64,000 bases of DNA, taken from positions 6,058,237-6,122,236 of the forward strand of contig BFEA01000007.1 of the NCBI GenBank assembly GCA_003427395.1. Direction: 5' to 3'. The notes under the pieces are model-generated. The model made no database searches. It saw only the letters and a program-made list of their open reading frames with translations, and was not told where the DNA came from. This DNA comes from Chara braunii (lineage: Eukaryota > Plantae > Charophyceae). The position numbers and the translations under genes are program-made. The stretch's first letter is position 1, and the number at the start of each line of letters is the position of its first letter. This document shows positions 22,901 through 64,000 of the stretch, piece by piece.

Positions 22901-23001
22901 GGTTACCAGGAGACAGATGGAGAAGGAAAGGAGGAGGGTGCAACAGCATAGGTGGGGGTGGGTGGGATTGATCGCCCAGATAAGGAGTCGCTAATCAAAC
23001 A

Positions 23002-23208
<207 letters not shown>

Positions 23209-23222
23209 TCAAGAAATTAATA

Positions 23223-24457
23223 GTTAAAGAACAAACTCGACATGCAAGTTCAGTAGGTCTCCCGATCCCCCTCAAATTCGAAATTATGTAAAAAATTCGG
23301 CTTTTCAGACTGCAAACGAATAATAATAATGAATAATAAATAACGAAACTGCGGAAAACTGTCCGCAAGTTCCAAGGATTCCAAAAAGTAAAAATGTGGA
23401 ATCAATCAGATGTGCAAGGAACATGAATGTGGACGAAGCACAAAAATCCAGATTGCAAAATGACACTGAAGTCCAAGTAGTCAAAGCAAGAGCAGATAGC
23501 ACAATGGAACCGAGTAACCATCCCTTTGAGAATGATACATAAGAATCGTGAGTCAATGTCCAAGCCCAATCGGGCAACACAAACAGCATAACCCAATGTA
23601 GCTCTCTCTCTTGAATGGCGCCAAGCGCCCTACCTACTCTACAGCCTATTACTACAACTACAGCATGAAAGCAACCAGAAAACTTGACGACCAGCGAGTG
23701 ATGATGTCAACACCAATGCCGACCTCCTCTCCACCAGGTACGTCTCTCTCTTCTCCCTCACTCTCCCTTGTTATCCCACACAGCGCCCTTCACCTCCGAA
23801 GAACCACCTTCGCCCTTCACCTTCTCTGCGCCCACAGGCAGCCCAGCTATGGCTGCCAGCGCCCTGCGCCCAGGCTGCGCTCTACCGCTTAGCGCCAGCC
23901 TGCCCTCACTCAGCCTAGCGCAGCGCAGGCGCACTCACAATGCAGCAGCGTGCCGGCCTTGCTCACAATGGCCAAGATTTCCTGCCCACTCGCCCTCCCT
24001 GCCTATATGCCAGTGTTGCGTGTGGGCGGCCTCCCTTGAGCCTGCGCCCGGGCCCCAATACCTTTACCCGGGCCCAATGCGGTTGGGGCCCAGGAGATGC
24101 AGTTGTGCCCCTTTCACCAAGGCCTGCGACCAGATTCAGATAGTGGACCGGTTTCCCATTGGCATTTTCGGCCTCTATATCCAGCATGCATTGTCGGCCT
24201 CACGTTTATGTGCCCAGGGCCTAACCAATTTTGGGGCCTTGGGATTTCTGCATTTGCAGAGATCCGATACTCGGTGCACTCCAACCAACTGGCGTGCGGC
24301 AACTGTATGGACCCCACTTCGTGAAATGTTTGAACAAAGGGCTCTTGTTGATTTGCTGGCCCGCCTTCACTTAGGGCGGGCACGAGGCTTGCTGGGGGCC
24401 TTAGCCCAGAACATGTACATCATGGCAAGGCCCCTTTTTGAGGGCTCAATCCTCACA
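23223..24457 (-). repeat. 3' LTR of G2 (far end approximate)
   Basis: Begins TG directly after the PPT; the distal end abuts the AT-rich plastid insert. Confidence 0.7.
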
Positions 24458-26080
24458 TTCCATCCCCCTTAGCTTTGAAAGTCCGTTGAGATGCTTACTT
24501 CGCAGGTGCCTTTTTTAACATTCTCTCATAATCTGCCACCACTTGAGGAGCTGTGTCAATCAGTTCCTCTCTAGTAAACCACCGATCTTCCTTCGGATCC
24601 GTATGATGCCTGAATCTGACGCGATACTCCCGCTTGGGTTTTGGAGGTCTTCCTTTACCCAGTGGCTTTGGAACAGGCAGATCTCCGTGATCCACAATGT
24701 CGTCGATGTCCACTTGACCATCCATGGTTGGGGGCAGCATTGATCTCCTGGAAGGGAATTGATCTGTCTCAGCGAAAGGTGCAAGCTTTGAGGCATGAAA
24801 GACAGGGTGAGTGCGCAGATGACCAGGGATGCGGATAACATAGGTAGGACCATCCAATTCATCCCCAACTCTGTCCAGGACCTCCCAGGGACCAAAATAC
24901 TGAGGCATTAGTTTACGAGAGATTCCGAATTCCTGTCCTAGCTCACTAGCCTTGACCCAGACCCGCTCCCCTACCTGAAATGAGGACTGCCAACGATGTT
25001 TGTTCTCAGAAGCAATCATTGCTTGCTGAGATTTCTTGATATGCTCGACAACTTGCTGTAGCAACTTCTCATAGTGCACATCGTACTCAAGTGTGCCTGG
25101 AGTTTTAGAGGATCGATTTTCAGGCAGGAGGAAGTCTAGTGCTGATCTAGGTTTCCATCCCAAGTGTAGCTGGTTAGGACTGACGCCGGTACTGCTGTGT
25201 ACAACATTGTTGTACATGCTGGCGATGAGAGGCAATTTCTCATCCCAGTCATCCTGGCTGGGCTTGATGTAATGCCTCAGCAAGTGTTGTACAACTCTGT
25301 TCATCTGCTAGGCGTGTCCGTTTGCTTCGGGATGATTCCCTGAAGTCATCTGAAGTTGAGTGCCCGTCTGTTCAGCAGTCTTCTTCCACAACTCACTTGT
25401 GAAACGAACATCTCTGTCACTAACGATTGACTTTGGTAATCCAAAATCACGCACCCAGTTGTCCAAAAACAACTTGATGACGTGTTCAGTCCTTGCGGTC
25501 TCTGGCATGGCAATTAGTCTAGCGTACTTGGTGAATCGGTCTATGATGACAAAGATGTGCCTCTTGCCATTCTTGCTGGTCACCAGGGTGTCCATGAAAT
25601 CCATGGAAACACTCTGTCTTGGACCAGCGGGGATAGGTAAGGGCTTCAGCAACCCAAGCGGTGCTTGAGTTCGCGGCTTGTCCCGCTGACAGACCTGACA
25701 GGTCTCAACATACTTCTTTGCATCTTCTAGCATTCCGGGCCACCAAAATCGCTGTACTAGATTGGCACTCGTCTTTTTGTAGCCAAAGTGTCCGGTTGCG
25801 TCATGACATTCTCCTAAGAATAAACTACGCAAACGTTCACTAGATGGAACAACTAGCCTTATCAAGAAAGAGAATCCCGTCCACCATCACAAACTCATCT
25901 TCTGTGGCCTTGTCTTTTGCCTGAAGTTTGCATATGATGTGCATCGTGACAGGGTCTTCCTGATAGGCTCCCATAAGCGATTGAGTTAGTTCCTCAGATA
26001 CACCAAACTCGGAAACTAGCGCCCCTAGGTAGTCTGCTCTACGGGACAGCGCATCTGCAACCTTGTTGTACTCTCCCTTC
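23223..26080 (-). mobile_element. Ty3/gypsy chromovirus G2, 3' half: RNase H tail, integrase, chromodomain, PPT and 3' LTR
   Basis: HHCC (ECHDATGHFG...CQVC), DDE core (SMDFM, SDRD, HPEANG), YFGPWEV and HPVFHAS, then a chromodomain. PPT AGGGGGATGGAA (24458-24469) is followed by LTR start TGTGAGG at 24457. An in-frame TAG lies at 25308. Confidence 0.92.
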
Positions 26081-30828: not shown

Positions 30829-33800
30829 TTAACGGTGATGGCATTGAGGCCCGTATAATCAATGCACATCCTTAGGGTCCCCCCTGTAGGGGGACGTACT
30901 TGGTCGAATCCAGCCCTTCTCTTTGAGTTCCTTGAGCTAGCGGCGAAGCTCATCTAGCTCCCAGGAGATATTATATAGATTTGCCCTCTAGGTACTGTGC
31001 CATTGGAGACGACTTCTATCGTACGGACAATCTCTCTTTCCGCCACACCCCTAGGCTCCTTGAAAAGGTTTGAATACTGTGCAACGATTGCTTCTTTGGG
31101 GGCGATCTTACAGCCTCCCCTTTCTCAGAGACAAATACTAAGTACATACCTTCTTCGCTTTTCTGCTTGTAGTTATAGAAAGATGAGGCGCACATGCAAC
31201 CGTAGTTGTCCACTAATCTGCTAACCTTAAACTTCTGCAGCCTAACGGTCCTTCCATCTAGTAACTTGTGGACCATTACCTTCCTATCCCAATAGAATTG
31301 AGGCTTATCAACCTCGAGGTAGTACATGCCTAGCAACCTCGAGGTAGAACATGCCTAACATGTCGAATGGCAGCTCGTCGCTAATAAGGAACGGGATTTT
31401 ATGTCTTAGTTCCCCTCCTCCATTGGAGGTGCAGAGTACATCCTTTACTACCACAAAGTGCTTGTTGGCTAAGGTAGATGCTACAGATCTGCTAAGCTGT
31501 TGCACTTGGTCCCCTAAGCGCAGCCTATCCACACAGGCATGGCTGATGAAGTTTCGCGTAGAACCTATGCCTGCGAAGGTTCCAACCTTTCGGCCACCTA
31601 CATTGACTTCTATTACAAAATGTTCACCCTTTGGACCTTTGTTCAACATCGCTGAAGAGTCTCTAGGGTCTATCTCTAACAACTCAGTTTCTAACTCCTG
31701 TAAGGACGCAGACACACATCCATCGAACAAAGCATCGATTGGTTTAGATCTGTCTGTAGGGCGATCAATGGGTCAATAGCCTTGGCCATTGTCTGAAATG
31801 GAGAAGGTAAGGTTACCACTTCGGCACGAGTAAGAGCATCTAACACTCCTACTGGCCCGAGGTGTTTCCCTACAAAGTGCTCGCAGAAGCACCACCAGAG
31901 TTAGAAGATCGCACCGTCACTATGGAGATGCAACCTTCGTAGCGACTCACTTACTCTTGCACTTGACCATTGTATGCCCATACTGGCCACAATTGAGGCA
32001 AGCACCTCGAGCAGCACGGTCTTGCCACACCTAGTACTCTATTCCAAGCTTTACCTATATGGGTGCTCCTTGGTCATATTGACCATCGGGCCGACCTGCT
32101 TTCTGCTTCCCGACCCCCTTAGCCTTTTCCCTGACAGGAGCGACGACTCCACCATTTGAAGTGTCTACACTCCTATTTGACTTTGGCTCTTCCCCAAGGT
32201 TAGAGAAGTTGTGGATCTCAATCGCTTGACCATCGTGGTTGACGAACATGAGGTTGCCCTTCTTTCTCCAGTCCTGAGGAAGCTTCTTCTTCCTTTCATC
32301 TTTGGGTCCCCTATTGGGCACTCCCAAGCTTAGCCTCTGTGTCTAAGGCCTTCTTGTTGAACGAGGCGAAGTTATGTACATCTACGGAGGCCTCAGTGAC
32401 CAACTTATTTTTGACATCTGTGGGCAGACATCGCAAATAAGTTGTTAAGAGGACCTGCGGATCGTACGACACACCAGAAACAACAATCAGTCGTTCTACG
32501 GTGTCTGTAACGTCGCGAACTATTCGGTATCTAGCTAGCGAATCGGTGGCCTTTTGAGGCCCCTGGGGGTCATGCCACCTCTTATAGACCATCCATACAA
32601 ACTCTTCCAATGTTCGAGCCTGTGCCCAGCCTTCGAAGTTCTTACCGTATCCTTGCTGCTGTACTATTCTGTTCAGCCATGTGGGTGCAGATCCTTCTAA
32701 AATGGATGCAGCGACTATGACTTCTTCCTTGGTCCTTGTGAGCTTATGCCTCACGTACGTGGGCATAGCTCTCACCCAGGTATCCAGATCCTCTTCTTGT
32801 CGTTAGAGAAGGGTTTAGGACTCAACAAGGGCATCTTGGGGGTCCACTGCATGTGTTGTATAACACCCTGTGTCCAGGCGGTATCCCGCGAGCTTGCAGT
32901 GGACCGCCAAGATAACCTTGTTGAGTCCTAAACCCTTCTCTAGCGGGGTACACTGCAAGGCGGCGGGGTATCTCTAGGGTTGTATACTGCAAGGCGGCAG
33001 GGCGGCGGGGTCTTGGTTGTACACTGCATGGGTTGTATACCGCAAGGCGGCGGGGTATCTTGGCGGGCTATCTTGGTTGTACACTGCATGGGTTGTATAC
33101 CGCAAGGCGGCGGGGTCCACTACAAGGCGGCGTCACTGCATTGACTGTGAAACCAATGGAACAGTTTGTTGCTGCGCTCAGGCGACGTCCTACCAGCTCC
33201 AGACCTGTCTCACCACTACGCAGTCTAATAGACAGTGTTCCAAGGTAGCTCTTTTTTGTGGTGTGGAATTGGTGCAGTACATGCACAGTGGGGAGAGCTG
33301 TCCTTTTGCCTCTAAGTCGGTTCTTGTTGTTAGCCAATCTGGAGTTGGCAGGTGTCTATGTATGATCTGCCATCGCAGTGCTCTGTGATTAGTCGACTTG
33401 ATGTGTGAAAAGGAGGTCCATTTGAAGTGTTGGAAGTCCCGCTTGTCCAGGGGAGAGTCTCTTTCCCAACGATGGATGATTTGTTGTGTCACTTGCACTC
33501 GTTTTCGGTCTATCCTACAACCGATCTTAACAATGTATTGCCACAGGGCCATTGTCTGAGACTCACCCCATGACCATTTTCACTCTGCAGGGTCGAATGG
33601 TAGGTCGTTGAGGGGGATGGATGGCTCATAGAGATAGTCCATCCTACTACTCTGATTCTAGTGAGCCTGGATGTCGGGCGTTGTATGTCCATGTCTTATT
33701 GTCTATGTATTGCAAACCAGTGTTCCTCGGAGAAAGTCAGGCAGTGGGCGTGTAGTACTGTGTTCCCATTTTTGTTGCTCTGCACCTCATACACCGCCAT

Positions 33801-34859
33801 GGGGATGGGCATAGATTGTGTGAGCACCACCCAATTTTTTGGTTGTATCGTCGGACCCGTTTTAAGGGCTTGAATCCAAGCCAAAGGGTTGGCTTCTTGT
33901 AGCTCCATCATGCAAGCGGCCATATTTTTTAAGGGGCCCGAGAGGTTCTTCAGAGAGTGCTCAAATTTTGACTTCCTTGCCTGGCCATCCCAGAGGTGGC
34001 CCACTGTGCATACCCCTTTTTGGACCCACTGCCTCCATTTGGAGGTCCCTTGAAGGGAGAAGGGGTTGCCTGTTTTGTCTGTGATGTTCGGGTGTTCGAA
34101 AAGTGGTTGGTGACCCACTACCCATCTGGGCGATGTGGGGGTGCGGTGCGGCCCTCTTTCTCTCCATAGTTTAACCATTGCTGCCCCTAACGGGTCGACT
34201 TGACGGTCCTCTTTTGCCCTTCCTTCCGATGAGTGGTCATCCACCCTTCGTGAGCCCACGAACAAGGATCAGCTCAACCATTGCAATGGGTGAACTGGAT
34301 GGAGGGGAAGAGAGGGGGGTGCAATGCAGTGCAGTTGGATGCAGGTGTACGGGGCCCACAGGATGTTGTTCCCCAAAAGGAGGCGAATTAAAAATTTGAA
34401 AAGAAGCGCCTTGATCTCTTTTTCGGGGTCAATTATTCCTAGGCCACCTTGTGTTGTGGGCTGCACAATGGTGTCCCACACCACCCTTTTTATGGATTGG
34501 GTGTGATTGTGGTTATTCTTCCAGAGGTACATCGTCGCGACCTGTTTCAACTTGGTAATCTGTTTTCTGTTGAGCTGTCAGAATGCCACCTTGTACCATA
34601 TGGATGCAAAGATGAAGTTATTAATTGCGAGCACTCTGCCTGCCAGAGAGATTGGTTTGCCATCCCAGTTAGAGGGCTTTCTGATTGCCAGGTCCACAAG
34701 TGAGTCACCGTGGTCTGGTGGCGGGCCCATCGCTGTGATATTTACACCTAGCATCTTTATTGCTGATTCTTTATTTTTTCAAGCCACTCGAGGATCAGCC
34801 GATGGGACCCCTCCCTGGGGGTCCAACCACCAGCCTTCCGTTTTCGTTCTCCAAACTTT

Positions 34860-37800
34860 TTTTTTTTTTTTTTTTTAACACATCCCCTGCAGTGCTAGTG
34901 GTACTAGTAGAAGCAGATACCACTAGCACCTGGGAAAGGCTCCATCTATTGGTGGGGAGCATCACGTGCTGGAAAACGGGTCCAGCGTCCCATATACGAA
35001 TTGAATCTGGAAGATCTGGAAAATACGAGGAAGGGAGGTTAAGGAAATCTTGCCAGCATGGATTACTTTGGAATCCAGAGGATTGACTGTGCAGGTTTTA
35101 AGAAAAAGGTTTTAAGAAAAGTAGCCCCCCCAAACTCCTACTCAGATGTTATTATCCAGTATCCTTGCCTGCCAGCATACAAGGGTAAGCATTTGATAAT
35201 CATTTCCCTGGGGCCACCGGGAGAAAAGTATTGCAGAGACATCTCTTCAGCCCTGATCCGGCCGCCAGATTGAGCACCTCTCCTTGATGCGACTGCATTG
35301 CCTACTCTAAATCTGAAGGATTTCACCCATTGCACAAACTTGCAGTCGAAGCTGTTGCAGAACCTTTTGCTACCTTGGGGGGCACCGGGGGTGATTCTTG
35401 ACCGATGGGCAGGGGGGTTTTCAGAAAGGGGCCTCGACTAAGGAAAGCAGGTGGGGGGAAGGGGTCCGGGAAATCAGAAGGGTGTCTCATAGGGAATGAG
35501 GGCTCAAAATTAGTCCAATCATTAAACACCAGGCGTTAATCCTTGGGGTGGGCCTGTTCCGCCTTGGTCTGTCCTCTTGGTTGATCCCCTCCCCACTGTA
35601 CCCTAGCTACCCATCCCCCCCTGTCCCCCTCAAGCCAGTCCGTGCAAAAGGCCGTGAGGGCCGGCTTAATATCCCGGTCCGTTTGAAAGGTATCCATATG
35701 GTTTTTCAAGTCATACCATCTACGTAGCAATTCCAGTTGGATCTGTTCCTTGATTTGTTCTATGTCCCCCCCAAGCCAGTCTGTGCAAAAGGCCATGAGG
35801 GCCCGCTTAATATCCCGGTCCGTTCGAAAGGTATCCATCTGGTTTCTCAAGTCATACCATCTACGTAGCAATTCTAGTTGGATCTGTTCCTTGATTTGTT
35901 CTATGAACTCCCCCTCCATCACTAACTTTTTCCATATTGAGAAGGCAACGCTGCCACCTCAGGGCCCAAAGGACTGTTTTTCTTCCAAGACTGAACCAGT
36001 TTCCTGTATAGGAGGGTGCGGTAGCCATTTCAGGGCAGTGTCCAGTCAGGATTGCTCGCCAAGACCACGACCAGGGTGTGTTCGGCATCATCTTGCGCCA
36101 CAGTCTGTCCCACCAGCGCCACGTCAGTACGACCATTGGACACTGCATGAAGATGTGTTCGATGGTCTCGTTCCATTTTCGTGAGGGGAAGACCGTGAGG
36201 CACCGTTGACACCAAGGTAGTGCAACACCTTTTTGCTTTAGATGAGTGTGGTCAATTAACCAAGCGTTTGTGGGGAGGCAGCGGTGGGCGATCTGCCATT
36301 GTAATGAAGTAATTTTGGACGACCGGGCTTTGTTTTCGCTGAACCATTTGATGGGCGTGACGAGGGCCCGGTCCACGTTAAGATATCTGGCCCACCTGTC
36401 GTTTATCTGATCTCTCAGTTGCCTCTTTAAGCGGAGCATCCTGTATGTGGTTTTGACTGACAAATCTTGAAGGTAGATCTTCTTGGTTGGCCCAGTTGTA
36501 GGTTCGCCTGCAGGCCTGGTTGTTGGTCCGCCTGCAGTCCCAGTCTTTGGTCCGCCTGCAGTCCGAGTCTTTGGTCCGCCTGCAGGCCCAGTCTTCGGTA
36601 TCCTGGCAGGCTGCCATTTCCATTCTGAGGGGTCCAAAGCCAACTCTTGAACGGGGGACTGAGGCTGAAACACAAAAGTCAGTGTCATTTCCTAGCACAC
36701 ATACACGAAAGACCTCCTCCCTCTCCCTCCATTCGAAAGGGTTGCAAGAACCCCTCAGCTGGTTTGTCGGCCTAAATGAATAGTATTCCACTAGTACGTA
36801 TGTGTGTCGAAGTTGGTGGATTCTGCCAATCCTGTGCAGCTCCCCTCGCAGGCCAACCCAATCGCCCTTCTGGAGGGTAGGACCCTGTCGCAGTATTTTG
36901 TACCATGCAAGTGGGATGGCGCCAGTGATCATGTCCAAGCGATTGTCTATGTGGTGGCAGTACTTGAGATCGTCCCGCAGTTGCACTGTCGACTTCCGGT
37001 CTTTTCTTTCCAGATCCCATAGTTGTCCCACCCGCATGATCCCATGCTGCACCCACCCCTTCCACGGTGATGCTGAACTGCAAAGCACTTGCCATGAGTG
37101 GGGTGTAATCCACCGGTTTCCAAGAAGTGGTTGTCGGGCCACCTCCTCCCATCGTTCGGGTGCTTGCTTTTCAGGGAGGGGCAGTTGACGCCAGCATTTT
37201 AGTAAGGACGGCCAGAAATGTTCCATTGGTGGCCTTGAATTTTTGGAGGGATTGACCAGTACCTGTCTTCTAGCCATGTAAGCGGGTGGACTCCACTTGG
37301 GGCCGGCAAGGCCAAAAGGGCTATATGTTCCAGTGCCAGATCCCCCCATTTTTCGAGGGATTGACTAGTACCTGTCTTTTAGCCATGTAAGCGGGTGGAC
37401 TCCACTTGGGGCCGGTGGGGCCAAACGGGCTATATTTTCCAGGGCCAGATCCCGCCAGGGGCAGCGGGTGGAAAAAATCAGTTTCTTGATCCATTGGAGG
37501 CGGAGGGCTCGTTCTTGCGTTTGGAGATCAATGATACCCAAGCCTCCCCCCTTCTTTGGTTGAGTCACCGAATCCCATGCCACTAGGTTGAGCACATTTG
37601 CTCGCTTGTCGTCGCCAGGCCACAAAAAAGCTGCCACCCTGGCCCTAAGAGTCTGATATGCAGCCTTGCATAGTGGTTAGAGTACCGATAGTACCACAAT
37701 GTGGCAAAAACTACGTTGTTGATAGCTAGTGCTCGTCCCAAAAGCGAGGTGTGTTTGTTTCGCCACTTGGACATCTTGGCCAGGGTTGGTGCACTGATCC

Positions 37801-40608
37801 ATTCGTTATTTGACGGTGCGCGGTCGCACGCCGACATGGACATCCCCTCGACATGGGGGGCGACAGGGGGTCTCCCCCCTTGATGGTGGATCTACCACCC
37901 TTGGGTTTTACTTTCCTAATTCACGGCCATGTCCGAGACATTTGCAAAGCGTTTCATCAATTGTCTCACCTCTTCCATATTTTCTTGCGTGGCGTCGACC
38001 ATGATGGTTAGGTCGTCCGCGAACAGTGAGCACATTGGTATGGCTTCTTCCGGGATCCGAGATATGCTTATTCTGGACAAATCCTTATTTGCCCGCAGGT
38101 TGGCGAATAGAGCCTCGATAACGAGAAGAAAAAGAAAGGGTGCAATAGGATCTCCTTGTTGCACCGACCTTTCCAATTTTATTGGCGGGGTTAGGGACCC
38201 ACTGATCTGTACCCTTGTGGTGGCATTCTGGTGTAGTATCCTTGTCCAACGACGAAAGACCGGTCCGAAGCCCAATTTTTAGGCACTTGTCCAAAAAAAG
38301 CCAATCGACATAATCGTAGGCTTTTTGAAAATCGATGAAGATAAAGGCCGCGTTTGTCTTTGATTGATGAGTTAGCTGCACCATTTCGTGAATTAAAAGG
38401 ATGTTTTTGTGAATGTGTTTGTGTTGCATGAAGCCCGTCTGGGATGGGTGTATTAGCTCCTCTAGAATTGGGATCATTCGGTTCGCCAATCCTTTTACCA
38501 CCATCTTATAGGTAACAGTCAAAAGTGTGATGGGGCGGTAGTCTCGAATGTTCATCTTATGTCTTTTTTTGTAGAGGAGAGACAACACCCCTTGGCCAAT
38601 CAGTTCCCCTATATCTCCTGAATGTCGTACCCTATATCTCCTGAACGCCGTACTTCTGCGTAATAGTCCATTAGGTTCGAACTCAACTAGTTCCATGTTG
38701 TTTCCCAAAATTCCTTTGGGAGGTCATCTAGTCCAGCAGTTTTCTTGCGTGGCACAGTCGTTCATCTCTCTTCTTTTGAAAGGGGTGCCTCCAAGCTATC
38801 CCTTTGCTCCAGGGCGAGTGTTTTGGTCATAGGTTGCAAGAAGTCCTCAATCTGGCGCAGACGGGTTTCTTCCTCAGCGGCAAACAGATCTTTGAAAAAA
38901 TCACGGGCTATTTTGACGCAGCCAGCCATGGTGAGGATGGGGTTCTCCTTTGTCCTCTCCAGGTCGTACAAGGCTTCTACTACAGGGCGATTAGATCTGG
39001 TTTGGGCAAGCCCAAAGGATTTGGATAGATTCCCTCGGATTCTCGCACCTTGCCACCTATACTGAGCATGTTGGAAAAGTTTAGCTTTAAGCTTGTTGAT
39101 GGATTGTATATGCTGCTCTACCGTAAGCGGTTTGTGTTGCTGGTTCAATTCACGCTGTTCCAGCTCTTGGAGCTGCCGCATTAGGTTGATCTCATATTGG
39201 TGATGCTGTCTAGCGAATTGCTTAGAGAATTTGTTACATTTTTTGCCCAGAAAGAAGAGTCCATTGTTAAACCAGGTGACAGTAGAGTCTATTGCCGGGG
39301 GGCGCTCCCTCCAGTATGCCCATACCTGGTCCAAATACTGTTGGAATGCGGTGAGTCGAAGTAATGAAGTGTTTAGTTTATAGAAACCAGGCCCTTGGTG
39401 CGGTCTTTTCTTGAAGGTCAACGCCACCATGCACATCTTGTGATCCAAATCCGGGTATGGGCTACGGTGGAGGATGGCGGCCAAAGAGAGGCTTCCAACC
39501 ACTGCCTCCGATGCCAAAATCAAATCGATTCAAGACTTTGAGAGTCTGGCAGGATTGGTGTTACAGATACATGTGAAGGTGCGCTCGGTGGGGAATGTAC
39601 TGTGGAATGTGTCAAATAGTGAGAGTGAATTGCACAAGTAGTTGATCATGGCCTCATCCTCCTTTGCATTTCTTTCCATGGAGGGGGGGACTTGCCAATG
39701 GTCCAGCCAACGATCAGGGGCCGCATTGAAATCCCCTGTTAACATGGTTGCATCCCTGCCGACCGCCGACCCCGACCGCCGATCGTATTGCAGCCGACCA
39801 GTAGGGCCGACCGGTCGGCGGTCTGCCGACCAGTTAGAAAACAACCATCCACTATTTTTTTTTCAGATTTGAGTTGGAAGTTGTACTGCGCTTGCTGAGT
39901 ACAACCCAAATCCGCTGAGAAACTTTTGGGGAAGGGGTGGTTGGGGGTGGGGTGTATAGGCGGATATAGGGGCGTATAGGGGGTATTCGGGGGGGTTATG
40001 AGGGTGTTGGGGGGCGGGTTTGGGGGTTTGGGGGGGTATGGGGGGATTTGGGGGGGGTATGGGGGTGTTTGTGGGGTTATTAAGGGTTCTGGACCGAAAA
40101 AAAAAAAAAAAAGTTTTTTTGGGTGCTGACGACCCCAGATCGGTAGGTGCTGACCAGTCAGGGGTCGCCGACGGTCGGAGTGTGCAACACGGCCTGTTAA
40201 GATCATCGGGATACCTTGCGTGATCTTTGCCTGGATCCTGCAAAAAGCTCCTCCAACTCAGGAGCCGTATTTGGGGCGTAGATACAAAAGATACTGATTA
40301 CTTCTAATTCCAGCGCCCCCAAAATCGAAACCCATCGCCCTTCTTCTGTATCCTGTTGCGAGTGCAGCACCTCCAGCTAGGAGTCCGGTGGGATCCAGAT
40401 GGCTGTCCCAAATCTTGCGGGCCCAGGCGCATGGGCGAGGTAAGCTTCAAAGGGCCAAACCACTTTGTGGGCTCTATGGGGTTCGGGGATGTCCATCAGG
40501 TGGGTTTCTTGGATGCAGATCACGGTCGGCCAGGTGCGCCCCCCGACCCCTCGAAGCAGATCCCAGATCACCTGTGACTTATCGGGGTTAAGGGTGGCCA
40601 GCCCAGCT
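34860..40608 (-). mobile_element. L1/Tx1-like LINE B: nearly complete, frameshifted ORF2 with 3' UTR and poly(A), nested in LINE A
   Basis: CIQETH, LTGDFN, YRPITLL, DFQKAYD, QQGDPIAP, LFADD, CQRC...EHIFMQC; poly(T) at 34857-34876; candidate TSD AACTTT at 34854-34859 and 40609-40614. Confidence 0.92.
39743..40192. mobile_element. hAT-like MITE inside the LINE B endonuclease
   Basis: 8-bp TSD CCTGTTAA (39735-39742 and 40193-40200); imperfect TIRs CATGGTTGCA / TGCAACACGG; removing it restores MILTGDFNAAP. Confidence 0.9.
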
Positions 40609-54020: not shown

Positions 54021-54257
54021 CATACTTGCAAGCAGACCGACCTGACGAGCGTACGGTCCGGTCCGCTTCGCTGCGTGCGGCACCCTCCCCCCGGACCAGA
54101 CGCACCCGGACCGGACCGGACGGGGGCGGTTTTTTTTTTTTTTTTTTGGGGTGGGGCATAACTGGTCGTCGGGCGCACATTCGTGCACCGCGCGGGTCCA
54201 GTCCGGCGGTCTGCCGCACGTGCGGAACCGCCCGGACAGTGTCCGCTTGCAAGTATG
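54021..54257. mobile_element. hAT-like MITE
   Basis: Perfect 13-bp TIR CATACTTGCAAGC; 8-bp TSD ATCTCATT (54013-54020 and 54258-54265); GGACC subterminal repeats. Confidence 0.92.
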
Positions 54258-55929
54258 ATCTCATTGCATGGATCGAGAGATACTGTCCATAGATAAAGGA
54301 GATACGCGGTCAGCATCTCTTATCCGTTGCAGTGGAACCTTGTTCCATAGAAGCCCTTTTTTTTTGCTGTTATAAGCAACACACCGACAAGCCTGCTTGG
54401 GACAGTGATATGAGCCCCTGCCCCTAGCAGCTCGGGTAATGACTCCAATCCTGCTGGAAAACGGGTCTTGCGTAGAAGCCCTGCAGTTGCTGATTTGCTT
54501 CCATATGAGGCTCCATCTATTTGTGGGAATCTGCCCCTTCGGGGAACTCAGACCAGAGTCCAATCAATATGTAGGTAGAGCACTCCTGGAAGTGAAACTT
54601 CTCACCCCCCTGAGGTCTCTTTCACTGTGTACTTGGCCACTGGGAGGATAATAGTACCAGGGGGCGGTCCCTACGGAAGCTTACGAATTCCGGCGCTCCT
54701 CTGACAGTGCCCGCTATGGGTGAGAATCTGGCATCTACAACAACCACGTGTGACCTAGAAGGCAACCAGTCTTACCTGCGTTTTCTTTGTTTTTGTCCAC
54801 ACCGTATCTTTTTTTTTTTTTTTTTAACAGCAACATCAGCAGGGTGACGTACTCTTGGAGGGAATAAGTGCACCCTCCAAGGGTAGGGTCACCCTTATTT
54901 GATGGGCTCCCGTCTTAAAGGAGGACGATATTCCTGTATTCTACTTAGCCTCCGGCATTGCGCCTGTTTGTAAAAGAGTTTCTTTATTGCGAAAGAAAAT
55001 GAACATGTTGTAATTGTATGTCCTTCCGCACTGGCTGCAGTTTGGGGGAAAAGAATATTCACGAAACTAAAAAGAAAGAAAAGAAGAAGGGTATGACATT
55101 CATCCCGGGAAAAGAAAGAATGGGCAACTGAAGAAAGGTTTCAAGAAAGAAAAACAAAACAGTGCTGGAAAGAACATGATTGCCATCATGCTATGGGTAG
55201 TATGGTATTGTACCTGGGAAATTTCTGGGAATTAATGGATGAGTGTGCAATCTGATGAATGAGAATGAGAAATCTTGGATCTAAGAATGACATTGGCTAG
55301 CCATCGAGGCAAGATCGTGACAGACAGACCTGCAGAGGGCCGGTTCTGTCATTGTTTCTTTTGTGTCTGCAGCAGCTGTTTGGTTGTTGACATGGCCCTC
55401 AAGGTTAGACCACATCCGCTGGAACGCAGGTCCTGAGCTGTGGGAGGTGGAGTCACCTCAAATCAACCCCAGGCAGTCGTTTGTGTGCACGCAGACAGAA
55501 TCTCAAGGAAAAAGAAATAAAAAAAGGGGACATGATTCTCAAGTGGAATAGGGAAATTAAAGAAAACCATGCATGTGTCATGTTCGCTGTGTGTGGGGAG
55601 GGGGCGGGGGGAGGGAAAGGAGGGGGGCGTGAGGGGACCCACTCACTTTTCCCTCTAGAGCATGACCCCCCTAGCCACGTGAGGGGATAGGGGGATGTCT
55701 GGGTGGCAGCAGGACAGCACACACCTGTCATGTGATGTCTGTGTGACTTGAAATCTAGGACCAGTTGTTTTAACTGCTATCACCCCTTGGCTACTGAACC
55801 GTTGTTGGGGTTTGGCCTGGCGGTCTAGCCATACGCATGTGCCATTTGTGTCCTGATTTCTATAATATTCCTGTACCGTTTTGCACCCCTGCAGTCCCCT
55901 ACGAAACTTTCAACTCCGGTCGGTCGGGT

Positions 55930-56225
55930 GCCTAAGGTAAATCCGTCAGGAACAAACATGGTCCCAATTTGAGGCGCACAGGTTGCCACACCCTCTCCAG
56001 GCATGAGCCTCGCCCATTAGCATCAATGTGAAGCTCTCTGCCAATATTGAACTGATGCCCAGTGGGCTTGTCCATATCAATTAACAACGAACACATGAAA
56101 AGAGCTCGCTTACGTGAAGACCAAAGCTTGCCAGGTAAAATTGTGCTGATTCCTAGTAATCCCATTTCTCCGCCGCCATATAGACCATAACAAACCCACT
56201 CTTTTGGCTTCGGGCACATACTTAA
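55930..56225 (-). mobile_element. LINE ORF2 C-terminal remnant
   Basis: A frame not listed in the ORF track reads VGLLWSIWRRRNG. Confidence 0.6.
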
Positions 56226-57403
56226 TATGGGGTTAGGGTGCAGAATCAGGCGACAGGGAAGCTCACCAAGTCCAGAAATACCAAGGATTGATAGATTGAG
56301 AGCTCTTTCTTGATTCTATGGGTGGTGGTGTTCCTAGCTGGTGCAGTGGTTTCTACTGATTGAATGGTCTGGTGAAGTGTCCCGACCACGGTGATCCCGG
56401 CGGTTTGCCGCGGGGGATACTGTGAGAAGTTAGAGGAAGGAGAAGTCGTAACAAAAAAGAACAAGTTAAAATAAAAAGGTGCTGATAAAAGCAGACATCT
56501 CTAGCATGCTCGGGGAGGCTCCATCTATTGGTGGGGAGCGACACCTGCTGGAAAGCGGGTCCAGCGTCCCTGTAAACAACCAAACATGCCACGTGTCCCT
56601 CGTACTATAAGCGTGAGTGGTAATGAACCGACACGTAGGCACACACCTTTTACCTAACGAGCAACATTGATTGCCCTCAACTGAGGGGATTAACTGCCCA
56701 TCACATTCTAAAGTCATATCCCTACTCAAAAACCCTCATCATAATCTAAAAAAATCTCTTGCAGCACCATGAGGGGAAGAGGCAATCAGAATAGGGTGAT
56801 AAAAAGTTAATTGAAGCGAGTCCTTGAAACAGGTGCAATTCCACCATTACACTTTCTTATGTAAAATTACCCGCTCCAATACGCCCCCCACAATCCTGAT
56901 GATCTACAAAAGCACTCAAACGGGGAGGCGCCATTGCCAGAATTCGTAGAAAAAAAAAACACCCACGTAGCAGAACACTAGCAAAACACATAGGCTGCCC
57001 TGATGCATAGCACCACTGCACCTCTTGCGCTGCCGCATGGCCAAAGTTTTATGTTTATAGCAGAAATTATGTTCCCCCCGGACAGCCTGTTAAGAGGCAT
57101 GCTCAAGCAGGAAGAAATGAAGAAAATGAGATGACAATCCCCACGTGGCGGGCCACCAATCATTCACACAGCAGCCCCGAGGACGATCCTCACATCACCA
57201 TGCGACCCAGTTATCCAGCCCTCACTATCCCACCCCTACGCGCCACCATCCCTCTCCCTGCCCCCCCACACAAACTTCCTGTTTACACAGCACTCCAGTC
57301 ATCCAACCCTCTAGCCCCTGCCCCCGAGCAATCAGCAAAGAACACAGGAAGGAAAACAAGAGCGGAGGGCAGGGGAGAGGGGAAAGAAACTGCCCAATCC
57401 CAT

Positions 57404-58278
57404 TTACCACTCTGAAGTGTCGACTCCGTCACCTTTGTTGTTGTTGTTTTTGTTGCCACCAGCTGTATTGTCGTTGTCATTGTTGTTGTTGTAATCGTTA
57501 ACTCTCCAAAGCGTGCACAATCTCAGGATCCCTCGTCCCATTCCATCGTTGCGCACAGTGTAGTTGTTATTGTTGATGTTTGCGGCCTGCCCCACAGACA
57601 CCGTCAGTTTGTAGTTATTGTTGTTATTATTGTTGTTGCAGATTTCTGCGATGCAGATAAGATGATTATCGTCGTCGTCACTGGCAGTCTTGGTGGCGTC
57701 ATCAGCGATGGCGTTGTTGTCATGATGACCATCCGCGACATCGTCGTCGTCCTCGAAAAATTGCTCCTCCAACACGCTGCAAAGACCTTGCCCCTCCTCA
57801 AGCTCCTCATGGCAGCGCCTCATCAAAGCACGCAATCATGGCCGATCTATAAACGCTTCTAGATGGGGGGGCGACCCCTCGTCTGACCCCCATATAATCT
57901 CCAGCATACATTGCTGGACACTCCGAATCCACGACGTCGACGGCTCCATCCTCTCGGTCACAGTCGTTCGCAGCATCGCCACCATCTGGCTTAGCCGCAC
58001 GCCACTCGCTTGGACAGTGCTGAACCACTCGGCAGCTCCTGTCTGCAGCTCACCCATACTCGCCATCTCCATCCACCCTTCCCTCCTCGTCATTTTCTAC
58101 ACCGCTGTTGATGTCTGGTATGTCGCCGAGTACTCCTTTCGTTTGTCGCGCCGGCTTCACTGAATCACTCGCTTGCCACATGGCATTACCACTCCGGATG
58201 ATGTCTCCGGGGACGGCGATGCCGTCCGCGGGTCGCTAGGTGCTGGCTGGCTCCACGTTCCAAACCCTCCCAGCAACC
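57404..58278 (-). pseudogene. Possible decayed coding segment (Asp/Asn-rich, low complexity)
   Basis: Codon-like GAC/AAC periodicity broken by stops, ending near a donor-like TG|GTAAAT; no recognisable domain. Confidence 0.3.
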
Positions 58279-59039
58279 TTTTTTTTTTTTTTTTTTTTTT
58301 GGTTGGGACAAAGCTCAAATCTATTTCTGGGAGCAGCACGTGCTGGGAACTGGGCAGGTGTCCACAATTGAAAAGCACAGTGGAAAGATCGCAGTACTAT
58401 GTCCAGAAGATCCATAACTTTCACGAGCAAGGGCAAGGTACAGTGACCCAAACCCTCAAGGCAGCACATCCTTGTGGACGTCATGTGGCGAATGGTGTAT
58501 GCTTCCCAGAGCCTGAGAAAACCCAGGAAGCTGCTTATGAGCATTGAATATATCATCATGCTTTTACCACTACTTTTTTTTTTTGTTGTTGTTGAAAAAA
58601 ATAGCCCTTGTGTAAGCCCACTATTCCGGCGGTGGTAAGAGAACCGTCGGAATTGAGGGCTTATCTGTTGGGCTGCTCCATCTATTGGTGGGGAGCGGCA
58701 CCTGCTGGAAACCGGGTCCAGAGTCCCATTGATACATCTTATAACACAGAGAGTGTTACTTGTTCTTTCCTAGGACTGTGGCCATTTCACTACCTTCTTG
58801 AGGTGAAGGCTAAGTTGTGAATATAACCTTTACCGCATTCTTCGAAACCTGGGCGCCACCAGACCACATGGCTGATGGCACGAGCCAAAACAATGAGAAA
58901 AGGTCCTGGTGGCGCTTCAGCAAAGTTGCTGCACAGTTCTACTCCACCTCAGCAAAAAGAGACTCGTAGGTAGTGGCGGTTTAAGGGGCCCCAGTTCTCG
59001 AGTTTCGATCAAATTTCTCACTGTACCCATCCCTAAGCT

Positions 59040-60243
59040 TGTGAGGGCTGCGGAGCGCTACCAGGAGCGCTCCGCGGCCTGACGTTTTGATGCGACGGCG
59101 GGCTCCTTGGTGATGGTGGGAAACGAAGAGCGGTTGGGGCACCATGACGGCAGCTTCGATGCCGGAACGAGAGTGCGGGGCGAGAGGAAGCAGGTCGATG
59201 ATGAGGCGGGAGAGGGATCGTTGGGCATGGAGGAGCATGGAGGACCAGGCTAGTGGGCATGTGCTTGCTTGCTTGAGAGGAAGAACAAGGGGGCAGTGTG
59301 TCTCATATGATGGTCTCGTTGGAGAGGAGGGATGCTGCGTGGGGGAGTAAGGGGAGGCAGGCAGGGTTTCATGGGCTAGAGGGAGAGTTTTACAAAAAGG
59401 AATGGGAGGTGGAACGAAGGAGTGAGGATGTTCAAGACAGGTCTTCTATAGGCGGGGGACGTCTGCGACGATGACACCCCTTCATTTCTTTGGGCTACCT
59501 GCGAGGGGCGGCTGGCAGGCTCAGCGGTTTAGACTTGTGACGTGGGTTGGATTGCTGTGATGGTAATCCGAGCAGCGGTCCTGTTATCTTCATTGTTCGG
59601 TCATTTGGGATGGTTGAACAGTTGTCAACCACAGGCGGCTGAGCTGCTTGAGAGCCGATGAAGGAGGAGGTGAGGTGTGGAGAGAGAGGGGGTGTGTTTA
59701 GTGATTGTTGAGTGTAAGTTGTGTTCTTCCTCTTCACGTTTTGTAGTGATGATTCTGAGATAGTAATAACGATTAGGTTAAAGCTCCTGTAGATCCTGAT
59801 GAGATTCTTAATGATGTGATTCCCAGATTGCTTTGTCTGATTCAATACCTATTGGTTGTCTTTCTAGTCTTGAATTCTAGACAAGTACCTAAAATATAAC
59901 TAATAATTCTGATTAGATTTTGAAAATCAAGATTAATTCTGACCTAATTTGTTTGCCTTTTTTTTCTGAATTTCACATCACTAGTCTTGTCGACTGTCGT
60001 ATGTTTTGTTACTGACTTCCTGGGCAATACTTAACCTGAGATTCGTAAATCAGAGGTTGGGCACCTCTGATTTCTTAAAAGTAATTTTCAAATCATAACT
60101 CAATCTCGTTTGATCTTCTGAATTTGTGTTGATGCTTAAATTCATGAGGTAGGTAATCTTGATTTCGAATTTCTTGTCACTGTGTGTCTCGATTCAATCT
60201 CTAATTGTCTGATCTTGATTTGCGATCCTTTTGAGGGCTTACA
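59040..60243 (+). repeat. Possible solo LTR
   Basis: Starts TGTGAGG like the G2 LTR and ends GGGCTTACA, with a GC-rich half then an AT-rich half; no PBS, PPT or TSD. Confidence 0.45.
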
Positions 60244-60620
60244 TGTTCAACTTCATGAGTGATGACATCCGGTTCTCAATGCTGGAATTTGCAACAGGGT
60301 GGGAGGTTTGATGGGGTGAACGTAATGCATCTAGTTGGTGAGGGGGCTAGCGAGCTGGATGAAAATAGGGTATGGCAGTGCTGAGGCGTGGTAAGTCCGG
60401 CTGGAGCAGGGTCAACAGGGAGGGGGGGAAGTTTGGGGGATGGACCTCACCCAGCTGGCAAAAATTCATTTCTAAATTTTGATTCAAAATAAATATGCTG
60501 TGAATTAAACCACCAGCAGGGTCAACAGGGAGGGGGGGAACTTTGGGGGATGGACCTCACCCAGTTGGCTAAAATTCATTTCTAAATTTTGATTCAAAAA
60601 ACGAGTATGCTGTGAATTAA

Positions 60621-60854
60621 ACCAGCAGTACCTGGCCCAGCTATTGAGTCCGAGCCTCGGCCGACCGGTACGCCGATCCGTGCCGAGGCTCGGACTACCG
60701 GGCGCAAGCATCCCGATCGCTGGATTGAAACGAACGAAAAAAACAGAAAAAAAAAACGAAAAAAAGTATGGCAGTGTATATTCCCACGCTATAGCGCCGG
60801 ATTCATTCGATTTTGCTCATCCTATGGAGGGCGCAGTACCATGAGGCCAGTCGC

Positions 60855-60905
<51 letters not shown>

Positions 60906-60944
60906 CAGCGACCTGCACGGAGGGTCGCGGCGAACTCGCTGCCC

Positions 60945-60979
<35 letters not shown>

Positions 60980-61186
60980 TCACACAAAAACAAGTAAGGC
61001 AGTGTATAGTCCCACGCTATAGCGCCAGATTCATTCGATTTTGCTCATCCTAGCAAGGGCGCAATACCATGAGGACAGCCGCGACNNNNNNNNNNNNNNN
61101 NNNNNNNNNNNNNNNNNNNNNNNNNNNNNNNNNNNNNNNNNNNNNNNNNNNNNNNNNNNNNNNNNNNNNNNNNNNNNNNNNNNNNN

Positions 61187-61221
<35 letters not shown>

Positions 61222-61372
61222 GCGAGGTCGCTGCCCCTCTCTCTCTCACACACACACACACACTCACACAAAAACACGTAAGGCAATGTATATTCCCACG
61301 CTATAGCGCCAGATTCATTCGATTTTGCTAATCCTATCGAGGGCGCAGTACCATGAGGCCAGCCGCGACGCG

Positions 61373-61441
<69 letters not shown>

Positions 61442-61569
61442 TGGCGACCTGCATGGAGGGTCGCGCTGTGGCGCTTATTTACCGAGTACCCCCTAGGCCG
61501 ACCCCCCTAGGGCTGTGGCGCTTATTTACTTAGTGCCTGCGACCGATAGCTGAGCGAGGTAGTGGTGGT
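60621..61569. mobile_element. TTAA-flanked non-autonomous DNA transposon with about 25-bp imperfect TIRs beginning ACC
   Basis: TTAA|ACCAGCAGTACCTGGCCCAGCTAT ... ATAGCTGAGCGAGGTAGTGGTGGT|TTAA; the interior has about three tandem units with (GA)n/(CA)n and an N gap at 61086-61186. Confidence 0.8.
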
Positions 61570-61573
61570 TTAA

Positions 61574-62897
61574 GGGGGGGAGTTAGAACTGGAGGATGGG
61601 AGGTAGGGAGGGGTTGTTTGTTCAGGTAAGTAGAGTTAGAAGGACGATGCTGGGACGACACAAGACGGTGTTGGAGTTTCTACTCTGTGACCCGGGGGGA
61701 GCTTGAGGCCTGTGGAGTTTTGCCGAGGGTGGAAGGCATAACTGCACTGTCCGACGTAGCTGGCGCCGGGGTATTTACCCTGTAACCTGTCAGGGGCTTG
61801 CAGCTAAGGGAGATGTCAAGGGAGGAAGGCATTTCCTGTCCAGCAAAGCTAGGTTGGTCGGCACTGGGGAAGGTTGTGTTGCCCTATCACCCTAGCAGAA
61901 GGGGGTAAGAGACCAGGTGTGTTTTGGTACGAGGACTGAAAGCCCGGACCGACGATTTGTCCGTTAAGGGGGGCAGGTTTGGATAGCTGGCGGGTTCAGT
62001 TTTGACCCTCTGTCTTTCTTGTTCTAGGGTTGTCCATATGTAGATGGCTTCTTGTTTTTGGTAATTGTTTAAGGGGGGGTTTCAGCTGAAGCCAGGTAAA
62101 CGGTCCCAGTATCCCATAGAGTGACTATGCGGAAATCTGCCTATGATTAGGGAGATTGTGGATAGAATGTCAGGGGGTGAAGGAGAAGGTTAGAACTGGA
62201 AGATTGGAGGAAGTAAGGGGGGTTCAACATGGGAAGGGATGTCTGTCTAAGTAAGTAGGTCAGGAGGACAATGTTGGGACGACGCAGGATGGTGCTGGAG
62301 CTTTTGCTCTGTAACCTGGGGGAGCAAGAGGTTTGGGGAGTTATGTCGAGGGAGGAAGGCATAACCAGGTTGATCGACGTACCTGATGCCGATTTTTTCC
62401 CCTGTAACATAGGGGCGTGTGGCTAATCGGGAGTGTCGAGGGAGGAAGGCACTCTTTGCCGTCTGAACCAGGCTGGTCGGTACTGGGGAAGTTTGTGTTG
62501 CTCTGTAGCCCTAGCATAGGGGGGTATGAGATCAGCCGAGTTTTGGTACGAGGAGTAAACGCTTGGACTTAACATTTTTTCACTTGTTGAAGGGGAGGTG
62601 TAAACAGTAGTAGGTTTCAGTTAGGGTCTTCTGTTTCCAGGTTTGGACTGTGGTTGGGTAGATCATAGACGTTTTTTTTTTTGGAATTGCAGTTGTTCTT
62701 AAAGTTGTTTCTCATAGGTTTTCGCAGGTATGGTAATCGACTGATTGTTTCCTTAGCAGAAGCCGGGTAATGGCCCCGGAATTTCAAATGTGTTACATAT
62801 TCTCAGTTGTACTTCAAAGGGACGCTGAGCCCGGTTCTCAGCACGTGATGCTCCCCACGAATATATTGGAGCTTTTGTCCCCCCCCCCAAAAAAAAA
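61574..62897 (+). mobile_element. Non-LTR element 3' region: two diverged units of about 600 bp ending in the structured motif and an A tail
   Basis: Units start near 61575 and 62180 (GTTAGAACTGGA...); motif at 62819-62881; A tract at 62889-62897. Confidence 0.65.
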
Positions 62898-64000
62898 TAA
62901 GGGCCCCAGTTCCCAAGGCCTCGATTATGACATGGAAAACAGAGATAACACTGGGGCCATTACTTGTCTTCAGCTTCAGGGAGCTATTGCTCCATTACTC
63001 AAATGAGCTCCGAGTTAATTCCTAGGATGTTCAAAAGATATCAAAGCTGCCAGCGGAACCAAATGGCTGGTGGCACCAGCCAAAACAAAGCAAAAAGGTC
63101 GTGGTGGCACTTCGCGAACTTGCTGCACACCGCTTCCGCAAAAAGAGACTGTGGGTAGTGGTGGTTTAAGGGGCCCCAGTGCCCAAGGCTTTGATTATGA
63201 CATGGAAAACAGGGATAACACTGGGGCCATTACTTGGCTTCAGCTTCGGGGAGCTATTGCGCCATTACTCAAATGAGCTCCAAGTAAAAAGACTAAGCGG
63301 ATTCAACCTGATGATCCACTAGTATCTCTTCCTTCTTTTTTATTTTTTCTTAACATCTGCTGGTGGTACTACCGAGGGCTCCCTTTTTTTTTAATTCAGT
63401 CAAACAAAGGCTTGGGACGCTGGAGTCTCTTTTTTTTTTTCTTTTTTTTTTTGAAAAACTCCCTTCAGACTACTAGGGGTGCTGATATGAGCAGACACCG
63501 CTAGTATTGTGGGGGAGGCTCCATCTATTAGTGGGGAGCCACACCTGCTGGAAAACAGGTCCAGCATCCCATGTACAATGTATAAAAATATATCAGGAAG
63601 TTTTTTTTTTTTTTTTTTTTTTTAATTATATAAAGCCCAGGGTGTTGTAGAGCCAAGGACCAGCCCCGCGGTGATTGCTGGTAGCGGCACCCAATGGTTG
63701 TCCTGACAGGATAGGCCACCTACCCTACCCATCCCCACGTTAATACTTCCAGCGCACCCCCTTTCCCTACTATCCTACCTCGGTGTGACCAGCACTTAGG
63801 GCCATCGCCCTACCAGTATTGAGGGCAATTTGGACCAGACAGCATTGACAAGCACCAGGGCTGGGCCAACCTCCCAGCCCTAATGGAAGCGGAAGTGGAC
63901 AAACCTTGCCGTACGGGAACTTCGGACGCCAGGCTCATGCAATCTTCTACAGGCCCAATTCAGAGAGTCTACCCAGCAGGATTACCTAAGCAAGGCAGGC

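Follow-up and report, generated by a model that had tools for sequence, protein, structure and literature searches.

The stringent mode of retrotransposition, in which reverse transcription favours RNAs that bear a particular 3' tail, is established for long interspersed nuclear elements (LINEs) of the L2/CR1 type, and a stem-loop in the 3' tail of UnaL2 and UnaSINE1 was reportedly described by Kajikawa and Okada in 2002. For L1-type elements, detailed work on template choice is, to our knowledge, limited to the mammalian L1, which is 'relaxed'. In this study, we analyzed a stretch of 64,000 nucleotides (nt) from the charophyte alga Chara braunii (contig BFEA01000007.1, positions 6,058,237 to 6,122,236; hereafter the window), in which a motif of roughly 60 nt recurs at the 3' ends of LINEs of the L1 type. 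We propose that this motif acts in cis, as an RNA module of the 3' untranslated region (UTR) of these poly(A)-tailed elements, and serves template recognition by the LINE machinery, a reading to which we give even chances.

Stringent LINEs of the L1 clade, with conserved and compensated 3' hairpins common to short interspersed nuclear elements (SINEs), have been published for monocots and Chlamydomonas, such as LINE1-1_ZM with ZmSINE2/3 in maize and sorghum and L1-1_CR with its SINE in Chlamydomonas (Ohshima 2012, PMC3472496). The initial annotation of the window, which contrasted stringent clades with a relaxed mammalian L1, was therefore framed too narrowly. From these few cases in monocots and Chlamydomonas, the same paper proposed that the ancestral L1 of the green lineage was 'stringent'. 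The Chara tails resemble the published ones in belonging to L1-clade LINEs with a poly(A) tail, in possessing a conserved 3' stretch (about 45-50 nt in the published elements) amid divergence, and in displaying a hairpin with a compensated stem and conserved loop or flank bases. They differ in sequence and fold, in being composed of at least four modules that are variously combined, in the conservation of the stems of their two core hairpins (SL1 and SL2) as well, and in their host, a charophyte alga. Moreover, the published tails are shared with SINEs, whereas no SINE partner was found for the Chara tails in 441 kilobases.

A cis-acting 3' UTR hairpin next to a 3' repeat, proposed to mediate template recognition by the ORF2 protein, is also described for UnaL2/UnaSINE1 and ZfL2 (Hayashi et al. 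2014, PMC4176376). Those elements end in short tandem repeats, belong to another clade and had their tail requirement demonstrated by retrotransposition assays, whereas the role of the Chara module is read from sequence. For human L1 and Alu, a stem-loop of the 3' UTR has been proposed as a structural signal close to the poly(A) (Grechishnikova and Poptsova 2016, PMC5135761); the claim there is computational and the hairpin position loosely conserved, whereas Chara displays a sharply conserved block of 55 nt with compensated pairs. The kind of element, a LINE 3'-tail signal, is thus already known and not a new kind. No match to the motif sequence or to its modular arrangement was found in Rfam or in the literature searched (Repbase lay outside that search), and the literature search returned no paper on the LINE tails of Chara.

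A conserved motif behind diverged LINEs

A covariance model (R1) was built from the ten copies listed in the initial annotation and scanned over the window. It recovered exactly these ten full copies with the coordinates and strands first assigned to them (51.5-85.7 bits, E 2e-15 to 5e-27), and four partial copies at 24-27 bits, so that the partial copies noticed near 44400, 48800-48870 and 54460-54530 are real as well. Nothing comparable was found by R1 in the first 34 kilobases (kb) of the window. A degenerate 27-nt pattern of the motif matches the window six times, against none in 100 shuffles. Nine of the ten full copies possess an A-rich tail 0-85 nt on their 3' side, which bears out the closeness to poly(A) described for most of them; the copy at 56512 has no poly(A) within 260 nt. 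The second loop reads AATAGA in eight copies, AATAAA in the copy at 44195 and AATATA in that at 62819, just as first noted, and at the variable site of the last one 98.7% of the genome contig depth is G, that is, AATAGA.

The mean pairwise identity of the motif is 85% among 12 tails. The upstream blocks of the same tails are 57% identical in the first 100 nt and 53% in the next 100 nt, compared with a shuffled baseline of 54.5%. The motif is therefore a conserved island in otherwise unalignable 3' UTRs. In six LINEs, namely LINE A and LINE C of the window and elements at four other Chara loci (L003, L005, L008 and L009), it follows the C-terminal domain of ORF2 by 645-1170 nt; the C-terminal domains of these motif-bearing elements are 29-57% identical to that of LINE A (tblastn).

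The host elements are read, from their sequences, as L1-clade LINEs with poly(A) tails. LINE A encodes, in this order, an APE-type endonuclease, a reverse transcriptase (RT) in which a FADD box is present and, at the C-terminal end of the translation, a zinc knuckle of the form CxxC...HxxxC. Pfam searches of the host elements gave RVT_1 at 2e-14 and 1.5e-11, Exo_endo_phos at 1.5e-4, under the cut-off, and zf-RVT at sub-threshold level only, in the relative P0156. Human L1 ORF2p is the closest solved structure to the LINE A protein. An exhaustive protein search with the RT open reading frame (ORF) at 38088-38723(-) returned GBG60615.1 of C. braunii as the best match (67% identity), followed by further Chara proteins; the nearest named relatives of LINE A outside Chara are plant proteins annotated as 'reverse transcriptase zinc-binding domain'. 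Between LINEs A and B, the RT cores share 51% identity. LINE A was apparently inserted into the RT of LINE B (40380-40650), the C-terminal part of which resumes at 33187-34181(-), below the poly(A) of LINE A. No motif follows this part because the 3' UTR of LINE B is interrupted by other sequence. No convincing target-site duplications were found around 22 motif copies, and the lengths and families of the elements are thus not delimited by them.

Two sets of DNA contigs and a pair of poly(A)+ RNA runs (raw reads) were mapped to positions 62700-63700. The summed contig depth in the motif bins ranges from 3.4e5 to 9.3e5, compared with about 10-15 for unique contigs, and is 9-80 times that of the family-specific flanks, so the motif is common to many families. 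In 377 kb of other Chara loci, R1 found eight strong copies, about one per 47 kb. These data suggest tens of thousands of copies over many families, as an order of magnitude only, since depth does not equal copy number. A pattern scan of metagenomes found only three short contigs with the motif, all from BFBZ01 (GCA_003427375.1) and 84-88% identical to parts of the window, and a scan of viral contigs gave no match. DNA runs under one species label contain 50-63% of the words sampled from 56300-59000. The motif was not found in the one L1-like locus of Closterium that was searched, which leaves no evidence for it beyond Chara. A charophyte tail module with copies that may number in the tens of thousands, spread over LINE families with about 30-50% protein identity, is a well-placed data point on the stringency of L1.

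The poly(A)+ RNA reads are rich in the motif, with a sense bias of 5.5:1 at a type B copy and about 1.5:1 at a type A copy (tail types are defined below), as read under the usual design of stranded libraries. No pile-up of RNA molecule starts or ends was found at the motif in the two raw-read runs. One motif subfamily, minor in the DNA, dominates the RNA and supplies about 80% of the poly(A)+ reads that cover the motif (reads on 63511-63577); its marker variants at 63571 and 63573 make up 1-8% of the DNA depth. The flanks of this subfamily were searched for in the window and are absent from it. It could represent an active element, a SINE or a highly expressed host transcript.

Modular tails and their RNA structure

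The modules were read from 32 model matches with their flanks (22 strong and 10 weak copies in 441 kb). Four hairpins were distinguished. SL1 consists of GGGAC and then GCUGGR-CCCGGUU-YCCAGC, and SL2 of GCUCC-CCACNAAUAGAU-GGAGC. HPa is GCCGGG-UAAUGG-CCCCGG, and HPb is a long variable stem with a loop near UGCUCNUAYCA, which occurs at 34892-34929, 63470-63507, 53901-53950 and 58612-58664 and at the loci L003, L005, L006, L008 and L009. Tails of type A are arranged as HPa, about 30 nt, SL1-SL2 and directly poly(A). Those of types B and B' are arranged as SL1-SL2, HPb, about 10-20 nt and poly(A), and the spacing from motif to poly(A) is nearly constant (51-57 nt) in five type B tails. Type D tails possess a lone SL1, a short U/A-rich stretch and poly(A) (L005:49588, L005:22849 and L009:49667). 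The tail L010:40414 has SL1 followed by HPa, about 100 nt and poly(A), and the 3' UTR of LINE C contains two extra copies of SL1. Type B tails are commoner than type A, and types B and B' carry most of the genomic depth. The tails are mosaics of at least four hairpin modules, combined in different orders by the LINE families. The motif and HPb are also handy markers of LINE and SINE 3' ends in the annotation of the Chara genome. The features of the window are as follows, with R1 scores in brackets.

34857-34877 (-): poly(A) tail of LINE A, 54 nt past the motif
34892-34929 (-): HPb, third hairpin of the type B tail of LINE A, with loop CUGCUUCUACUAG (family consensus about UGCUCNUAYCA), predicted by RNAalifold
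34932-34991 (-): full motif of a type B tail, 873 nt past the ORF2 C-terminus of LINE A, whose C-terminal ORF ends at 35864 (85.7 bits)
35864-40613 (-): LINE A body with several frameshifts; endonuclease at about 40613-39533, RT with FADD box at 38723-37919, CxxC...HxxxC zinc knuckle near 36000
44195-44254 (-): decayed full copy with AATAAA loop and a poly(A)-like run 78 nt downstream (56.7 bits)
44359-44432 (-): interrupted partial copy, beginning 7 nt past the poly(A) of another element (24.3 bits)
46430-46492 (-): full type A copy with a closing stem GGGAC/GUCCC of 5 base pairs (bp), poly(A) immediately after (78.5 bits)
46522-46545 (-): HPa (GCCGGG-UAAUGG-CCCCGG), which precedes the type A motif by about 30 nt; kept in the 46430, 48946, 62819 and L001 tails
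48795-48881 (+): two additional SL1-only copies in the 3' UTR of LINE C, at 48795-48836 (24.1 bits) and 48841-48881 (27.2 bits)
48946-49000 (+): decayed type A-like copy, 645 nt past the ORF2 C-terminal similarity of LINE C at 47711-48301 (tblastn) (66.9 bits)
53838-53895 (+): full copy, then HPb at about 53901-53950, poly(A) 85 nt downstream (69.5 bits)
54503-54565 (-): rearranged decayed copy, then HPb with loop CUCAUAUCA and poly(A) (26.8 bits)
56512-56570 (-): full type B copy with a 3'-truncated tail without poly(A), adjoining an 18S ribosomal RNA (rRNA)-like fragment (79 bits)
58305-58363 (-): decayed copy of type A, with poly(A) starting 3 nt downstream (51.5 bits)
58670-58727 (-): full copy of a type B' tail, with a long hairpin at about 58612-58664 (loop UUCUCUUACCA) and poly(A) 82 nt downstream (73.6 bits)
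62819-62881 (+): full type A copy with compensated SL1 GCUGAG/CUCAGC and loop AAUAUA, preceded by HPa at 62759-62779, with poly(A) starting 6 nt downstream (74.7 bits)
63511-63570 (-): full type B copy in a 5'-truncated element of about 170 nt, HPb at about 63470-63507, poly(A) at 63426-63453 (79.5 bits)

The copy at 58670 belongs to the same family as L008:3804, which trails a LINE ORF2 by 1167 nt, and its whole tail folds with z = -3.8. The 18S rRNA-like fragment at 56258-56372(+), which abuts the truncated tail of the 56512(-) copy, scored 40.6 bits, under the Rfam cut-off of 50, and may be an rRNA retro-fragment inserted at this tail. The initial 12 nt of the motif (GGGACGCTGGAG) are also present at 63415-63426(+), where they immediately adjoin the poly(A) (a poly(T) in this reading) of the 63511 element on the opposite strand.

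SL1 covaries. About 90% of its cells are paired in 32 sequences and three of its six pairs have changes on both sides, as counted in an alignment of related copies fitted to a model that contains the SL1 helix. The top pair is A-U in 21 copies and G-C in nine, the pair next to the top changes from G-C to A-U in the 62819 copy, and the base pair changes from G-C to U-A or A-U in three copies; these cover the variants GCTGGA/TCCAGC, GCTGGG/CCCAGC and GCTGAG/CTCAGC, which occur as originally described. Three of the single changes in SL1 preserve G-U wobbles. Both sites of the A-U variant of the 62819 copy are polymorphic genome-wide (G at 62828 is 49% and C at 62838 is 83% of the depth), so this is a trait of a subfamily and not of one decayed copy. 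When SL1 was scored together with a tested pseudoknot helix of 3 bp, none of 500 shuffles reached the covariation score, and slid registers were 23-56% paired. The H-type pseudoknot itself, between GGG 5' of SL1 and CCC of the first loop, was rejected as uninformative because its pairs are almost invariant.

No compensatory change was found in the stem GCUCC/GGAGC of SL2 among 22 copies, where the pairs are either invariant or broken. All five pairs are present in 15 of the 22 copies and the others have one or two mismatches, itself a fitted count made with a flexible register, as the type A loop is 1 nt longer. Covariation thus speaks neither for nor against the folding of SL2. When 12 copies were aligned, the alignment folded better than its column shuffles (z = -3.0, 11 of 1000), and the single-sequence z-scores of the 60-nt motif are weak, ranging from +0.6 to -1.9.

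The best-supported RNA structure in these tails is HPb. RNAalifold predicts 11 pairs in its inner part, eight of them compensated, from 13 tails. The UCCC run that follows SL2 pairs, in tails of type B, with GGGRG past HPb, and all five pairs of this outer helix are compensated in nine sequences; in the same nine sequences, HPb and the outer helix together comprise 19 pairs with 14 compensated. The closing stem GGGAC/GUCCC, which was described as full in some copies and weaker in others, is complete with 5 bp in type A tails only (46430, 62819 and L001) and has 4 bp in the 58305 copy. In type B its 3' strand does not simply pair more weakly; it pairs downstream instead, and the three-way junction therefore does not hold for the tails in general. 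The junction is both the minimum-energy and the centroid fold in type A tails, the copy at 46430 among them, and the minimum-energy fold of five of the ten window copies in single-sequence folding. The 5' GGGAC is invariant even in tails without its 3' partner (type D and several of type B). Hence, of the covarying three-way junction proposed in the initial annotation, the covariation of SL1 stands, but SL2 never covaries, and the closing stem is confined to type A and out-competed in type B; the junction is at best a type A feature. SL1, SL2 and HPb represent defined RNA elements for binding and retrotransposition tests.

Template recognition and other readings

We propose that LINE proteins, either ORF2p or a particle of ORF1p and ORF2p, would bind the hairpin modules on their own transcript, and that poly(A)-primed reverse transcription would thereby favour RNAs bearing the tail, which corresponds to the 'stringent' mode; retrotransposition may then depend on the tail. 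A recognition or assembly site is the most economical reading of the position before poly(A), the conservation across families, the sense transcription, the compensated pairs in SL1 and HPb and the conserved loops. The earlier suggestion of a selected cis-acting structure common to diverged LINEs holds for the conserved block, which stands out from its flanks, is shared by elements with strongly diverged ORF2 C-termini and is transcribed mostly in sense, but not for a general junction. 

Several observations weigh against template recognition. Neither SL2 nor the single-stranded parts vary more than the stems do, and conservation alone is no proof that SL2 folds. The SL1 counts come from a fitted alignment of related copies, as stated above, and once decayed copies are taken in, a small helix, GGUG/CACC, is predicted as a competitor. 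No SINE with the motif was found in 441 kb, and ARAGORN, run on the window and 12 loci of this total, detected no transfer RNA (tRNA)-like head upstream of any tail; the single tRNA gene found does not adjoin a tail. In L009:62200 the motif is followed by poly(A) directly after SL2, without HPb, and the distance from module to poly(A) varies between the tail types. The near-identity between families could reflect recent exchange of modules, not long purifying selection. In addition, a full-length retrocopy of U6 small nuclear RNA, which we take to be of plant type, lies at 49694-49794(-) in the region 49661-49810, with CTTT and A17 behind it and the direct repeat AGGCACATCACAT of 13 bp on either side (49810-49798 and 49673-49661). 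Since U6 was retroposed without the tail motif, one or more of the LINE machineries here must be less than strictly stringent.

The initial annotation had offered, next to RT recognition, a structure-presented poly(A) signal. According to this explanation the AAUAGA in the loop of SL2 would be a near-upstream element directing cleavage and polyadenylation, supplying the tail needed for L1-type priming, and a role in recognition would be compatible with it. AAUAGA, AAUAAA and AAUAUA are known variants of the poly(A) hexamer, and genomic depth shows the hexamer to be nearly invariant in Chara. Its distance is suitable in type A tails, where poly(A) starts 16-23 nt past the hexamer, after a C, and the B'-type tail of L009:62200 is polyadenylated 16 nt past it and does not continue into HPb. 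This does not extend to the B and B' tails, which hold most of the genomic depth and in which the hexamer is about 70-105 nt from poly(A), though type B tails possess no other A-rich hexamer before it. Tails with SL1 only, lacking the hexamer, still end in poly(A), and a hexamer leaves the conservation of the whole 55-nt block unexplained. The RNA reads gave no pile-up of molecule ends, where the genomic tails are templated and reads could not reveal true cleavage sites. We consider it unlikely that a poly(A) signal accounts for the motif, although it may act as one in a secondary role. It is very improbable that the motif is a self-cleaving ribozyme or belongs to another known class of structured RNA (hammerhead, hepatitis delta virus-like, or a tRNA- or 7SL-like domain). 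Ribozymes are known in other retroelements and the compact multi-helix shape would suit one, but the comparison with Rfam that had been suggested at the outset returned no existing family for the motif, neither at gathering thresholds nor at E up to 10, in agreement with the early remark that it is not a hammerhead. Nor did ARAGORN find anything at the motif; the two RNA runs contain no discrete RNA starts or ends, and the junction is not general.

The block could also lack a selected RNA function of its own, being a piece of one ancestral tail that template switching or recombination passed between LINE families before it was amplified; its similarity would then be a matter of recency and copy number. 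The varied orders and combinations of the modules, including the duplication of SL1 within one UTR, and the fragments of the motif at element junctions (63415-63426 and L009:62200) agree with such a history, as do stems nearly as invariant as the loops, the lack of covariation in SL2 and the failure to find the motif in the Closterium locus, which leaves its deep age without evidence. Against it, families with C-terminal domains of only 29-57% identity all retain the block at 85% identity in UTRs that are otherwise randomised, three separate pairs of SL1 show compensations, and the compensated variant with A-U at pair 5 marks a whole subfamily by read depth. Repeated capture of one module itself suggests usefulness. 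We regard an absence of function as quite improbable. Template recognition can also be extended, tentatively and with more doubt than conviction, to a combinatorial code, in which hairpin modules (SL1, SL2, HPa and HPb) are swapped between families, SL1-SL2 is a common docking site for the LINE particle or a host factor, and the same hairpins might double as a structure-presented poly(A) signal. If true, such a code would give direct evidence for stringency in the L1s of ancestral streptophytes, and would provide a defined RNA-protein pair for studying template choice by L1-type reverse transcriptases.

Other features of the window

The assembly gap at 61086-61186 sits in a tandem array, as the sequences on its two sides (60887-61085 and 61187-61369) are 83% similar. 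It is more than 1.6 kb from any motif copy and has no bearing on the motif finding. The array around the gap (60756-61465) is partly palindromic and gave many weak, sub-threshold Rfam matches to microRNA precursors, which are hairpin artefacts. Remains of a long terminal repeat retrotransposon of the Ty3/gypsy type are distributed over 18840-25304, with RVT_1 and RNase H-like domains at 18840-19952(-) and a Tf2-1 SH3 domain at 24495-25304(-).

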